64,000 nucleotides of DNA from Carpediemonas membranifera BICM (Eukaryota; Protista; Fornicata). Where the stretch lies: assembly GCA_019828565.1 (NCBI GenBank), contig JAHDYR010000053.1, positions 594,214 through 658,213 of the forward strand, written 5' to 3'. The notes under the pieces were generated by a model. It saw only the letters and a list, made by a program, of their open reading frames with translations. It was not told the DNA's origin and ran no database searches. The first letter of the stretch is position 1; each line of letters opens with the position of its first letter. Shown piece by piece: positions 3,641 to 51,096 of the stretch. The translations under genes and the position numbers were made by a program.

Positions 3641-3777
3641 TCACGTGCGTCAGTGTGTCTTAAAGTGCGGTGGCCATGTCATCTGATGATGAGTCCGACG
3701 ACCGCCCCCCAATGCTCTCTCCCCCTGCGCCGCCCTACCCTCCTCCATACACCCTCACCCCCGGCCCATTTATCATA

Positions 3778-17608: not shown

Positions 17609-17871
17609 GTAGCGCAGCTCATTTATCGCGGCGCATGTATAAATTCCGGCTTAATAGCTCTGACCGGTGATGCAAAGGTAGATTCAAGGGTCGAGTCGAC
17701 GATGGGCCACCCGAGACCCAGGCCAGGTCTCCCATGCAGGACAGAGCCGACTGGACTCCGGACCGGGCAGCAATCAGCATCTCTACTTATGTGTCTTGGG
17801 GATGAGGTACATTTCGCAGACTCGTGATGCTCATCATTTGATGCGCGAGCAGTTTAAGTCCCACAAAGCAG

Positions 17872-47024: not shown

Positions 47025-48491
47025 TTAATGAGCCTTCTTGGCCTGAGACGCCTTGAAAGCATCGATGGCCGCTTGGACTTCAGGGCCGACCGTAATCTGC
47101 GGGGCGGGGCATGTCTCGGGGCTGTACTTAAAGCTCGCGTTCTCACCGTCAAACACGTGACGGTTCAGACGGCAGCCAGGCAGCGCCTTGAGCACGCAAG
47201 AGTTAGCCTTGAACCCGCTTCCAAACGCGATTTGCCACACGATGTTGCCGGGGCGCATCTTGTGCTGGTTCTCGTGGTAAGCGAGCTCGTACCAGACAGA
47301 AGAGGAAGACGTGTTGCCATAGCGGTAGAGAGTGGCGCGGGACGCCTCGACGTCCTTGTCGCTGAGGCCGAGGTTCTTTTGAACGGTGTCGATGACGCCG
47401 CGGCCGCCGGTATGGATGCAGAAGTTGTCGATGGCCTTGCGGAAGTTGGGCGTGTACGCCTTGGCCTTGGAGTGGAAGTGCTTCCGGGCGATCATGTTTG
47501 CCATAAAACGCGCCTTTTCAGTCCATGGGAGAATGACTTCGCCGAGCTTCGCCATGTTCTCGGTGATGGCCTTGCCGGCTACCTTGGGTACTTCTCTCGA
47601 AAGCCTGATGGCGGTATAGCCCTCATCGTCGTGGTCGAACTTGATACAGTCGTGGGAGAAGTCGTGGCGGCCATGGTGAGTCCGGATGCAGTGGAGGAGC
47701 TCGTAGCGAGTGCCCCGCTTCTTCTTGGTGGAGAAAAGCATCGCAGCACCACCCAGGCGGAAGAGGGCGGACTGAAGAGAGAATGCCTGGTCGTTGCCAT
47801 AGTACCAATCAATTGATGTGACCTCAGTGGAAACAAGCACGGCGTTCTTGCCGGGGTTGGCCTTGAGGAGGTCGTTGATGAGATCAACACCGATCAGAGA
47901 GGCGGAGCAGCCCATGCCGCCGATCTGGAAGGTACGGACCTTGGAGGGCATATTGTAGTGGTTGACGATCATGGCAGTAATAGAAGGGGTGGGGCAGTAC
48001 ACGCTGCAGTTGACGACGAGGAAGTCGATGTCGTTGGGCTTCATGCCAGTGCGGGCGAAGAGGGCGTCAAGGACGCCCGTGCATGTCTGCTTGGCCTCTT
48101 CCGCGGCAGGCTTGAGGCCGACGCCGTGGACGAAGGTCTTGGGGATGTAGGTCTGGTCACCGAGACCGGAACGCATGAGCATCTTGGCTTGGAACGCCTT
48201 GTTGGCGGGGGTGTAGGTCTTAACACTGTCGATCATGTCGTAGAGACGCTGGGCAGAAGCCATTTGGGCCTTAGGGGGGTGGTAGATAGCAAAGTCGTCA
48301 ATGAAAACACGTCTGTTGGTCTTCTTGACCCTGTAAAGTGCATAGGCGGTCACAACGATGATCGCAGCAATCCAGCGAGGGGAAAGGGAGAACAAAGAGA
48401 CGTAGGACGCCTTCACAAGATCAAACGTCGTCGTTTGGATTGTGTAAAGGATCCACTGCAGCGCTGGCTGCTCAGATAATAGCCGGTCCAT
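47025..48491 (-). CDS. KCS: FAE1/KCS-type 3-ketoacyl-CoA synthase (very-long-chain fatty acid elongase)
   Basis: RSGLGD.TY, VNCS..PTPS, GGMGCSA (catalytic Cys), HTGGRGV (His), GNTSSSS (Asn), WQIAFGSGFKANS. Confidence 0.95.
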   Translation of the reverse strand: MDRLLSEQPALQWILYTIQTTTFDLVKASYVSLFSLSPRWIAAIIVVTAYALYRVKKTNRRVFIDDFAIYHPPKAQMASAQRLYDMIDSVKTYTPANKAFQAKMLMRSGLGDQTYIPKTFVHGVGLKPAAEEAKQTCTGVLDALFARTGMKPNDIDFLVVNCSVYCPTPSITAMIVNHYNMPSKVRTFQIGGMGCSASLIGVDLINDLLKANPGKNAVLVSTEVTSIDWYYGNDQAFSLQSALFRLGGAAMLFSTKKKRGTRYELLHCIRTHHGRHDFSHDCIKFDHDDEGYTAIRLSREVPKVAGKAITENMAKLGEVILPWTEKARFMANMIARKHFHSKAKAYTPNFRKAIDNFCIHTGGRGVIDTVQKNLGLSDKDVEASRATLYRYGNTSSSSVWYELAYHENQHKMRPGNIVWQIAFGSGFKANSCVLKALPGCRLNRHVFDGENASFKYSPETCPAPQITVGPEVQAAIDAFKASQAKKAH

Positions 48492-48831: not shown

Positions 48832-49317
48832 TCACTTTGACGCCTGCTCAGTGATCTTCTTGGCCTTCTGCTGCTGTGTATACCGGATGAACTGGGCGTA
48901 TGCCCTGTAGTAATCTTGGTAGTACTGCATCCAGGCTGCATACTGATCTCCCGTAAGCCGCACACGGTAGCCGCCAGTCTTCCCTGACGTCTGCTCTTCC
49001 AGGTGCTGCTTGTGCTGCTGACGTACGGTTAAGACAAGTTCGACGGCGAGTTTGATACCCTGTTGAAGCTTCTTTTCGTCACGGTGAATAACCTCAATAT
49101 GAAGCTTTTCTGCGGCTTCATCTTCCGACATTTGTCCGTATGTAGCTCCTTTCCCCTTCACACATGTCCTACATCCAGTATTCTCAAAGATATATCGCAT
49201 GAACTGCCCTTTCGGGCCGATAACGGCGGGAATGACTTTGAAACCAAGTCCACTCTCTACATCAATAATAACACGCGCCTTTGTGGGCGAGATATTCTTC
49301 ACCTCCACATCCCCCAT
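48832..49317 (-). CDS. KH-domain RNA-binding protein (KHDC4/RIK/SF1-type KH)
   Basis: VIGPKGQFMRYI...TG...VKGKG, KLHI; Tyr/Trp-rich tail YAAWMQYY. Confidence 0.78.
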   Translation of the reverse strand: MGDVEVKNISPTKARVIIDVESGLGFKVIPAVIGPKGQFMRYIFENTGCRTCVKGKGATYGQMSEDEAAEKLHIEVIHRDEKKLQQGIKLAVELVLTVRQQHKQHLEEQTSGKTGGYRVRLTGDQYAAWMQYYQDYYRAYAQFIRYTQQQKAKKITEQASK

Positions 49318-49366
49318 TGCGTTCGGGCTCGGTTTTTGATCCGCCTTACCTTAAAGTGCGTCAAAG

Positions 49367-49392
49367 GTGTTGCGCAGTATAAACACATTGTT
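49367..49392. repeat. 26-bp direct repeat, copy downstream (3') of the Fanzor ORF
   Basis: gtgttgcgcagtataaacacattgtt, identical to 50458..50483. Confidence 0.95.
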
Positions 49393-49468
49393 CGAACCTC
49401 CCAGACAGGGCCTGAAAGGAACGATCAAAGTGCCAAACTGCACAACATCATCCGTCCGTAGACGAATG
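49393..49468 (-). ncRNA. Candidate Fanzor omega-RNA/fRNA scaffold (may begin within the ORF 3' end)
   Basis: Minus-strand hairpins CAUUCGUC-UACG-GACGGAUG, GUGC-AGUUUG-GCAC and CCUUUCAGGC-CCU-GUCUGGGAGG; G:U pairs form only on the ORF sense strand. Confidence 0.65.
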
Positions 49469-50263
49469 TTAGGTTCGGTTAGCCAATTGATGATACTGGA
49501 ATGATGTTGGAAGGCGCGGAATCAATGTGCGACTGAACGGAGAGCCACTGAGCTCATCTTCCGTGGCAAGAGAACGCCACAGGATGTTCTCTGCAGCACT
49601 CTTGTCCCGATGATCAACATTCAGAGCATCAGGAACTGTTGCGCGCCACTGAGCACCACGGCACTGTGGATTTTCGCAGAGCATCACACGTTGTGGGTGA
49701 ACGTGCTGGTCATCACGCGGACGAACTCGCTTGTAGGGGGCGTGGCAGTGAGGGCAGACGACGGTGGTGCGGTCCTCGTTAACCATGTTAAGATCGACGA
49801 CAATGTTATACCCCTTGAGAAGGGGTACTATCTCTCTCGCGAACTTTCGATATGGCGCGCAAGGAATGAACATACCAGCAGGCGTGGTGAATCCCGAGCT
49901 CCCGTAGAAGACTTTCAGGCGAATGGGGGTGGCGATGGGATGGTGGCGACCGAACTCCCGAGCCAACTGTTGGCCGCAGCGGGCGAAGTGCTTCTGGCGA
50001 AGGATGTGGTTCGCAAAGCGCACTCGGCGGAAAGACTTACGCATTCCAGCCTCGAAAATGTCGTTCGCGTTGTCCAGCACAAACCTAATAGAGTTGTTGA
50101 TACTCACTAGTCTTGTGCTCTTGAACGGCGCGGCCGTCATATCAAAGCCGAAACTTGGCGTCTTAGTGTATCCGCACTTTGGAAGGACGCCGGAGCTGGT
50201 GGTGCCATCGGGGTGCCTGATGTAATACCCTCCGATGGACCTCGCGCCCGGGTCGAACCCCAT
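49469..50263 (-). CDS. Fanzor1/TnpB-like RNA-guided RuvC endonuclease (C-terminal half only)
   Basis: GFDPG (D4), 'FRRVRFANHILRQK', 'VFYGSSGF...AP', VNEDRTT (E163), CPHC...CENPQC zinc finger, HRDKSAAENI (D220), terminal PFSR. Confidence 0.88.
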   Translation of the reverse strand: MGFDPGARSIGGYYIRHPDGTTSSGVLPKCGYTKTPSFGFDMTAAPFKSTRLVSINNSIRFVLDNANDIFEAGMRKSFRRVRFANHILRQKHFARCGQQLAREFGRHHPIATPIRLKVFYGSSGFTTPAGMFIPCAPYRKFAREIVPLLKGYNIVVDLNMVNEDRTTVVCPHCHAPYKRVRPRDDQHVHPQRVMLCENPQCRGAQWRATVPDALNVDHRDKSAAENILWRSLATEDELSGSPFSRTLIPRLPTSFQYHQLANRT

Positions 50264-50457
50264 GAGGTGGGCATCAGGATCCGGCGCGGGCGGAGCCTCG
50301 GCATTATTGGATGTGGAATAGAAGACAATGAGACGACGTGTGAGCGATTGTGATGTTTGCAGCTGTGCTGACGTCCACGAAGAAGACGCTTTGTGGAAGC
50401 CCTGGAGAAGACGATCTCCCTACCGACTTAAGACGTGAGTAGGAGGGAGACAGGGCA

Positions 50458-50483
50458 GTGTTGCGCAGTATAAACACATTGTT
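50458..50483. repeat. 26-bp direct repeat, copy upstream (5') of the Fanzor ORF
   Basis: Identical to 49367..49392. Confidence 0.95.
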
Positions 50484-50682
50484 TGACCCTTCAATAGCAC
50501 AAAAGGCGAATTGAATGCTGCAGCTCTACAGACACAGTTGGAATCGTTAGGCCGACTTTAACCTGCCAGCAAGTGACCTACCTTCATTTATGTCAAGCTA
50601 GCAACCAACCATAAATCGATCAGACAGAAGCTTTTCTGGCTGTTTGGTTGCTTCTCAGCTTGGTTTGAACAATCTTATATAC

Positions 50683-51096
50683 ATGGCTATGATCAAACCA
50701 CCTTTCTATTGCAAGAACCAAGAGGAGACCGTCTCCGACGAGGAAGCGCACTCGGCTGCCGTGAACCAGGCGAAAGCCCGTGCCATGGCTCCGGTTCAGC
50801 AGAGCATCTTCCTTTTGGTCATATACTTCATGATTCGCCCCGGTTCTGTGAGTCTTTACTCGATCTACATGGTGATCAATCAGGTCCAGATGGCCTTCAA
50901 GTCAATGGTCGGTGTTCGCTCCCAGTTCAAGACCATTGCGCTTCCTATGAAGGAGCTGCTGCCATACATGCTGGCCTACGTCGGGCTGAATATTGGCAAG
51001 ATCATTTTCGTTCTTTTCCGCCTGTACCAAGCCCTTTCCTCTGTTGCTGGTGGTTCTCCCCCAGCTCTTTCCCCGGTGCCTCTGGGGTTCGTATAG
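50683..51096 (+). CDS. EMC4: ER membrane protein complex subunit 4-like (EMC4/DUF1077)
   Basis: PP.Y N-terminus, 'AMAPVQQ..LLVIYFM..GSVSLYSIYMV', F, then second TM; size fits. Confidence 0.62.
   Translation: MAMIKPPFYCKNQEETVSDEEAHSAAVNQAKARAMAPVQQSIFLLVIYFMIRPGSVSLYSIYMVINQVQMAFKSMVGVRSQFKTIALPMKELLPYMLAYVGLNIGKIIFVLFRLYQALSSVAGGSPPALSPVPLGFV

Follow-up and report, generated by a model that had tools for sequence, protein, structure and literature searches.

LTR elements of the TRIM/LARD type have TG..CA repeats, a PPT and 5-bp TSDs, also occur as solo LTRs, lack gag and pol and depend on a helper. Among the Gypsy elements, Ty3 integrates at Pol III starts and Tf1 at Pol II promoters. The Fanzor nucleases are recognized by a DPG motif and a rearranged Glu six residues before the zinc finger, and these fingerprints mark Fanzor1, Fanzor2 and pro-Fanzor TnpB alike (Yoon et al., 2023, PMC10711439). 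In SpuFz1, the scaffold consists of a small stem-loop followed by a long stem and a 14-15 nt guide from the flank (Saito et al., 2023, PMC10432273). According to a 2026 review, an LTR-retrotransposon-like carrier has not been shown for Fanzor, and our literature search (one supplement not covered) found no paper naming a Fanzor with Carpediemonas or a metamonad.

We analyzed a window of 64,000 nt, the whole stretch of DNA under study, from the genome of Carpediemonas membranifera (24.2 Mb in 69 contigs). Every named homologue is a C. membranifera protein, which bears out the metamonad host proposed in a sequence-only reading of the window. That reading had noticed a 264-aa ORF with D4, E163, four zinc cysteines and D220, together with 52 open codons between its ATG and an upstream TAG (50420-50422), and we found all of these as it described them (Table 1). 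The ORF also carries T166-T167 and R219-D220, and residues 4-220 match the Fanzor motif of Bao and Jurka, D-X(125,275)-[TS][TS]XX-C4 zinc finger-X(5,50)-RD (PMC3627910). Both fingerprints of Yoon et al. are present as D4-P5-G6 and E163-x6-C170. As for the additional motifs in the reading, RVRFANHILRQ exists, the spacing of 'YG...F...AP' is looser than given, with nine residues from F to AP, and PFSR sits about 20 residues ahead of the ORF end and thus is not terminal. A copy comparison showed that the ORF stops a few codons before the ends of its sister copies because of a 3-nt insertion.

Table 1. Features of the Fanzor element and its insertion site in the window.
Feature	Position	Strand	Remark
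Fanzor ORF remnant, 264 aa	49469..50263	-	RuvC-I, bridge/REC2 region, RuvC-II (alternative Glu), C4 zinc finger, RuvC-III
D4, RuvC-I aspartate within DPG (GFDPG)	50252..50254	-	
E163, alternative RuvC-II glutamate	49775..49777	-	six residues ahead of CxxC
C4 zinc finger C170/C173/C196/C201	49661..49756	-	
D220, RuvC-III aspartate in HRDK	49604..49606	-	
52 open codons upstream of ATG	50264..50419	-	36 element-leader codons joined in frame to 16 pre-RuvC codons
Whole mobile element, 1,134 bp, TGT...ACA	49368..50501	-	internally deleted derivative of ~2.28-kb family-1 Fanzor element
5-bp TSD CCTTT, right copy	49363..49367	-	
5-bp TSD CCTTT, left copy	50502..50506	-	
~1.15-kb internal deletion junction	50310..50311	-	true start codon, WED and REC gone; common to at least five independent insertions
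80-nt hairpin closing on the element's last base	49368..49447	-	candidate omegaRNA scaffold
Small upstream hairpin	49449..49468	-	within the 123 nt kept by even the smallest derivatives
43-bp mini-LTR (TG..CA on + strand)	50459..50501	-	also a solo unit with its own 5-bp TSD (L055)
31 bp identical to one end of the 92-bp Ty3/Gypsy LTR	50471..50501	-	putative integrase attachment end
Purine tract directly before mini-LTR on retro-sense strand	50441..50458	+	ends AG like the Gypsy PPT
25-bp terminal direct repeat of 50459-50483	49368..49392	+	
Host promoter-like motif GCACTTTAAGG of KH gene	49349..49359	-	TSD of this copy starts 8 bp upstream, the minor insertion position
Host KH-domain gene, downstream of insertion	48832..49317	-	

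A genome search listed 130 matches, of which one group shows about 87-100% identity and other matches 54-61%. The encoded Fanzor proteins form three families with a mutual identity of 45-56%, families 2 and 3 being sampled through a few loci, database proteins and the coordinates of pattern matches. D, E, D and the four zinc cysteines are kept in all three, as are the DPG/Glu fingerprint residues. The number of matches and this conservation show that the ORF is not a chance occurrence. The Fanzor-family RuvC/zinc finger recognized from the letters is upheld. The fingerprints extend to Fanzor1, Fanzor2 and pro-Fanzor TnpB and therefore do not by themselves give Fanzor1. Thus, the motif order that had been called characteristic of Fanzor1 is real but shared by all Fanzors and pro-Fanzor TnpBs.

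Profile searches returned marginal matches, to Pfam PF07282 with the ORF (E 0.06, below cut-off) and, as the best PDB match of a three-family profile, to Cas12f (E 0.019). NCBIfam, Rfam and single-sequence PDB searches gave no match, and no homologue outside C. membranifera appeared in large protein database searches or a viral-contig scan. AF2 models were of low confidence (pLDDT 37 and 31), and the Foldseek matches obtained from them are meaningless. The Atlas language-model feature score reached 0.97-0.98 against Cas12f1-TNB/DUF8286 clusters of giant viruses and fungi. We regard the ORF as very probably a Fanzor. Its assignment to Fanzor1 is likely, resting on the size of about 620 aa with a helical N-half, the zinc-finger insertions, the Atlas neighbors (DUF8286, NCLDV, Mucoromycota) and the predicted terminal RNA stem. 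The full-length product is probably an RNA-guided nuclease.

What the ORF preserves is the RuvC half of a Fanzor, and it lies in a non-autonomous element with an internal deletion. The sequence-only reading had missed this element, with its ends, 5-bp TSD, terminal direct repeat and internal deletion. The copy comparison placed the common ends exactly at 50501 and 49368, both of which are also positions of read ends in the sequencing runs, and 21 of the 33 complete copies sampled have perfect 5-bp TSDs of variable sequence. No TIRs were found at the element ends, where only TGT/ACA is inverted. A 25-33 bp repeat was considered as a long TSD and rejected, since all copies contain it and have a separate 5-bp TSD outside it. 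The internal deletion removed REC and WED, whose absence had been correctly recorded; a copy without them is unable to make an active nuclease and is dead, serving at most as an omegaRNA supplier like a 'ghost' locus. The same deletion is found at other sites in L002, L022, L030 and L035. At least five insertions with different flanks share it and it therefore preceded mobilization, which contradicts the view of a copy recently truncated in place. The smallest derivatives retain only 51 nt at the left end and 123 nt at the right.

Family-1 left ends number 123 genome-wide. The longest family-1 copies measure 2.2-2.3 kb and carry a single gene of about 620 aa and no second ORF, so that the longer relatives predicted elsewhere in the genome do exist. 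None of the sampled family-1 copies has an intact ORF, the longest all being broken by frameshifts or deletions. Many of the breaks fall within short base runs and may reflect errors of the assembly. The full element of about 2.3 kb encodes Fanzor only, antisense to an LTR-derived shell. The associated transposase that had been proposed as a search target is not encoded in the element, whose carrier bears LTR-retrotransposon marks instead. Chimeras between Fanzor families also occur: L013 joins a family-2 left end and N-half to a family-1 C-half, and at G000:C13:119641-120852 a family-1 left end stands beside a divergent RuvC half. Two of the genome's Fanzor proteins, P0032 and P0013, bear the public names 'cytosine deaminase' and 'Chromosome partition protein Smc', apparently by misannotation. 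Parts of the element were also seen at about 99% identity and low depth in DNA run X6, labelled organism B, which points to contamination or a co-cultured strain.

Read on the + strand, the element opens with 25 bp that repeat the first part of the mini-LTR, and it closes with a purine tract followed by the 43-bp mini-LTR. Pairs of its left-end pattern are also found at a distance of 4,553 bp and represent the 92-bp LTRs of a 4.64-kb Ty3/Gypsy element (L051-L064) encoding a gag zinc knuckle, RT, RNase H, integrase and chromodomain on the strand opposite to Fanzor. The LTR pairs of this Gypsy are identical and its TSDs perfect in 15/15 cases; it is therefore very young. The Fanzor element has the TG..CA ends and a TSD within the 4-6 bp of an LTR element. 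Solo mini-LTRs occur at L055, L027 and L046, and two unrelated shell types have a purine tract where a PPT would lie. The same layout recurs in family 2, whose 63-bp mini-LTR is unrelated; this family too has a purine tract and solo units, and its repeat pairs, 1.9-2.4 kb apart, bracket family-2 RuvC matches. Only 25 of the 43 bp are shared between the two ends of the Fanzor element, short of the identity that LTRs have at insertion, and no TGG-type primer-binding site was seen by eye in either the Fanzor element or the Gypsy helper. Judged by these sequence marks, the carrier is an LTR-derived shell with the signs of a Gypsy integrase, yet not a canonical LTR element.

Several arrangements of these LTR-type elements deserve mention. 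At L054, L055 and L058, a young Gypsy lies head to head, 5-7 bp from the end of a Fanzor element or solo mini-LTR, at the same promoter site, and at L052 two tandem Gypsy copies have one shared 5-bp TSD, a repeated insertion at the same base. The family-2 63-bp mini-LTR (L011, L027, L046) has two alternative outer halves with 37 and 14 genomic matches. Pairs of family-2 outer ends lie 5.5 kb apart at G000:C13:711519-716991 and 9.7 kb apart, surrounding Gypsy matches, at G000:C68:592850-602593; both are candidates for a family-2 helper. The genome contains 716 integrase-core (rve) candidates and is rich in LTR-type integrases.

The insertion sites follow a rule. In 24 of the 38 left flanks sampled, the first base of GCAG[TG]TTAAG lies exactly 21 bp ahead of the left end (p about 1e-59), and genome-wide 72 ends, two of them of Gypsy, have the motif at exactly -21, compared with none at the mirror position. 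Gypsy insertions, in either orientation, fall at this +16 position and at -8, and the window copy uses -8, upstream of the motif of the KH gene. Family 1, judged by its motif-matched ends, is inserted in one orientation only; family 2 uses an offset of -12 in 3/3 sites and points away from the host gene. The Fanzor element thus shares with the co-resident young Ty3/Gypsy a 5-bp TSD, an insertion rule and what its sequence marks as the left attachment end.

The motif looks like a core promoter element of Carpediemonas, and we know of none described in this lineage. It precedes long host ORFs in 5/23 cases against a background of 3% (p 8e-4), and an RNA-like contig of the KH gene (run type guessed) begins 22 nt after it. 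By analogy with promoter-directed elements, we infer that it is a host promoter element that tethers the integrase, in which case base-exact insertion beside it would also mark a core promoter element of the host. In the form GCA[GCT][TG][TA]T[AT][AG]G, the motif lies 23-57 nt ahead of the start codons of many host genes, and its sites in the window are at 3668, 11375, 34913 and 49359 (- strand) and at 17849 and 55672 (+ strand). Among the neighboring genes are EMC4 (50683-51096, + strand; PF06417), divergent from the element's left end, and a FAE1/KCS-type fatty-acid elongase (47025-48491, - strand; Pfam PF08392, E 4e-92).

We found no TAM, that is, no conserved bases in or next to the TSD, in the left flanks and the ends genome-wide; a weak T/C preference at -7/-6 in the sampled left flanks fails in the first 15 genome-wide hits. 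This lowers the canonical homing model but not the identity of the protein. The upstream motif as TAM plus seed was marked down, because Gypsy uses the same motif and the motif precedes host genes.

The last 80 nt of the element are predicted to fold into a hairpin of -42 kcal/mol (z -7.5) on the Fanzor strand, compared with -26 on the other strand. Small hairpins precede it, an arrangement that recalls the SpuFz1 scaffold (PMC10432273). The predicted fold is a terminal double-stranded stem with no pseudoknot, and the element is not in IS607. Variants of the family-1 hairpin are not compensatory: there is no covariation, and one pair is broken in 18 of the 33 copies. The terminal stem of family 2 is weak and not significant (z -1.2 to -1.5). 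The internal sequence GCAGTTTGG was considered as a guide or a replacement promoter and rejected, since it forms the 5′ hairpin arm and is mutated in 18/33 copies. Contigs from runs resembling RNA cover the family, although the run type is guessed. With the same proviso, one such contig (48764-49396) joins the 3′ end of the element to the KH gene, suggesting read-through into the flank.

The two ends of the Fanzor element have separate histories. Recurrent repeat variants are discordant between them in 12 of 13 cases (8/8 in copies with perfect TSDs). In Gypsy, by contrast, an LTR variant is carried by both LTRs. It follows that normal strand transfers do not renew the ends of the Fanzor element, for which canonical LTR copying is ruled out. 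A U5 refreshed from the helper in each cycle is disfavored, given that position 18 is C/G in 16/38 element ends and A in 30/30 Gypsy LTRs. Nearest relatives lie on the same contig in 10/27 cases compared with 1.0 expected (7/25 without segmental duplicates), and this clustering fits DNA-level hopping or local gene conversion. On contig C65, the inverted sister copies L015 and L018 lie 23 kb apart with one TSD split between them, the mark of an element-mediated inversion. Imperfect TSDs are commoner in Fanzor elements than in Gypsy (Fisher p 0.009), the Gypsy sample being younger and chosen intact. The family-1 pN/pS of about 0.7 is near neutral, and recent family-1 amplification is therefore largely passive.

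The explanation that best accommodates these observations, with a probability of roughly 0.58, combines insertion by the Gypsy integrase in trans, a terminal omegaRNA and Fanzor homing. A host factor bound to the core-promoter motif would tether the Gypsy integrase, which would insert the element in trans, and of the three parts we hold this insertion at promoter sites to be highly probable. Most insertions would fall 16 bp past the start of the motif, close to where transcription begins, and run in the direction of the host gene, so that the host promoter could transcribe the Fanzor. The 80-nt terminal hairpin and the first 15-20 nt of the flank would form the omegaRNA, a part that we favor by a modest degree. 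Intact Fanzors would then cut the element-free site and homologous repair would copy the element in, either between alleles in a zygote or as donor-site restoration if the element moves as DNA. This homing step is the most tentative and, in our estimate, somewhat doubtful. The host is predicted to be haploid, has meiotic genes and lacks NHEJ (PMC8516963); it is probably sexual, and its biology would suit homing. Against the explanation as a whole stand the lack of a TAM, the discordant ends, the non-compensatory hairpin variants, the weak family-2 stem, the pN/pS of about 0.7 and the absence of an intact ORF among the sampled copies. The missing TAM bears on homing in particular, as it leaves no evident way for empty and filled sites to be distinguished.

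Independent inheritance of the two ends would be expected if the LTR-derived shell now moved as DNA, with the Gypsy integrase or a Ginger-like integrase-derived transposase nicking at both CA ends and Fanzor restoring the donor site as in DNA transposons; this would be the favored explanation in a version that does without an RNA intermediate. The concentration of closest relatives on one contig, the TSD split between L015 and L018 and the 716 rve candidates point the same way. However, clustering and TSD swaps are also explained by gene conversion or ectopic recombination, the ends have no inverted repeats beyond TGT/ACA, two unrelated shells have a purine tract at the PPT position, solo mini-LTRs exist, and the TAM is missing all the same; we consider this route unlikely. 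It is less probable still that the Fanzor is a passenger. In that case a non-autonomous retroelement would have acquired it from a DNA transposon and would amplify it without benefit to itself, using the hairpin for packaging or priming. Near-neutral pN/pS, the many broken family-1 copies, the lack of a TAM and deleted derivatives that spread well without the protein are what a passenger would leave, but three families at 45-56% identity have retained D/E/D and the zinc cysteines, and at least two different shells have the same antisense layout with the 3′ end of the gene at the terminal stem, which implies long-term selection.

Could the Fanzor itself choose the site? An RNP that recognizes a TAM and seed over GCAG-K-TTAAG and cuts or tethers there would amount to RNA-guided integration as in CAST. 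A protospacer counted from the first G of the motif puts the TSD at 17-21, equal to the staggered cut of SpuFz1 (PMC10432273), family 1 inserts in one orientation only, and the family-1 (+16) and family-2 (-12) sites mirror each other about the motif. But Gypsy, which has no Fanzor, inserts at these same sites in either orientation and at a second site as well, the motif has the degeneracy of a protein-binding site and is enriched ahead of host genes, no fixed element sequence fits the consensus well, and different Fanzor families share one motif. That the Fanzor RNP steers the Gypsy integrase or makes a 5-nt staggered cut at the promoter motif is accordingly very improbable; if true, it would be RNA-guided integration in a eukaryote, an analogue of CAST that combines the integrase of a retrotransposon with an OMEGA nuclease. 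The least probable reading, an ordinary Fanzor-bearing TIR DNA transposon with Gypsy merely nearby in the manner of earlier proximity surveys, could appeal to the fact that element-borne Fanzors described so far are all in DNA transposons and that the Gypsy beside SpuFz1 was read as a later insertion (PMC10432273). It is largely refuted by ends that are direct repeats and not TIRs, by the 31 bp identical to the Gypsy LTR terminus, by the PPT and solo units and by the shared target rule.

The new point is the carrier, LTR-derived, integrase-marked and so far undescribed, in which a known nuclease family resides. Three diverged Fanzor families reside in one genome, and the two with readable ends sit in LTR-derived shells, that of family 1 with a Gypsy integrase signature. 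Therefore, the explanation of Fanzors by restorative homing needs extension, whether to allelic homing, to a DNA-level route for an LTR-derived element or to a non-cutting role. From the absence of a TAM one would predict either that the Fanzor is unusually relaxed or that self and non-self are told apart by a new rule.

The element resembles the SpuFz1 system of Spu-1 (Saito et al., 2023, PMC10432273) in the DPG, alternative Glu, C4 zinc finger and RD of a protein of about 600 aa or more, in a predicted 3′-terminal stem at the last base of the element and in many deleted 'ghost' copies that keep the 3′ end. Unlike that system, it has no TIRs, no fixed TSD and no TAM upstream of the insertion, its carrier is LTR-marked, and it has no sequence-detectable relative outside Carpediemonas. 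With Fanzor2 and the pro-Fanzor IS607 TnpB (Yoon et al., 2023, PMC10711439) it shares the DPG and alternative-Glu fingerprints, but it lacks a serine recombinase and ends in a predicted terminal stem, not a pseudoknot; the pattern used for TnpB allows 12-18 residues in the zinc-finger loop and 4-8 from ZF to D, and both are exceeded here (22 and 18). Short TG..CA repeats, a PPT, a 5-bp TSD, solo LTRs, the lack of gag/pol and the presence of a helper align the carrier with the TRIM/LARD type, from which it differs in its unequal, independently inherited ends and its antisense nuclease cargo. Finally, as with Ty3 and Tf1, integration at fixed distances from a host promoter element is associated with a chromodomain Gypsy, whereas here the offsets are base-pair-exact, are measured from a protein-coding promoter motif and depend on the shell (+16/-8 versus -12).
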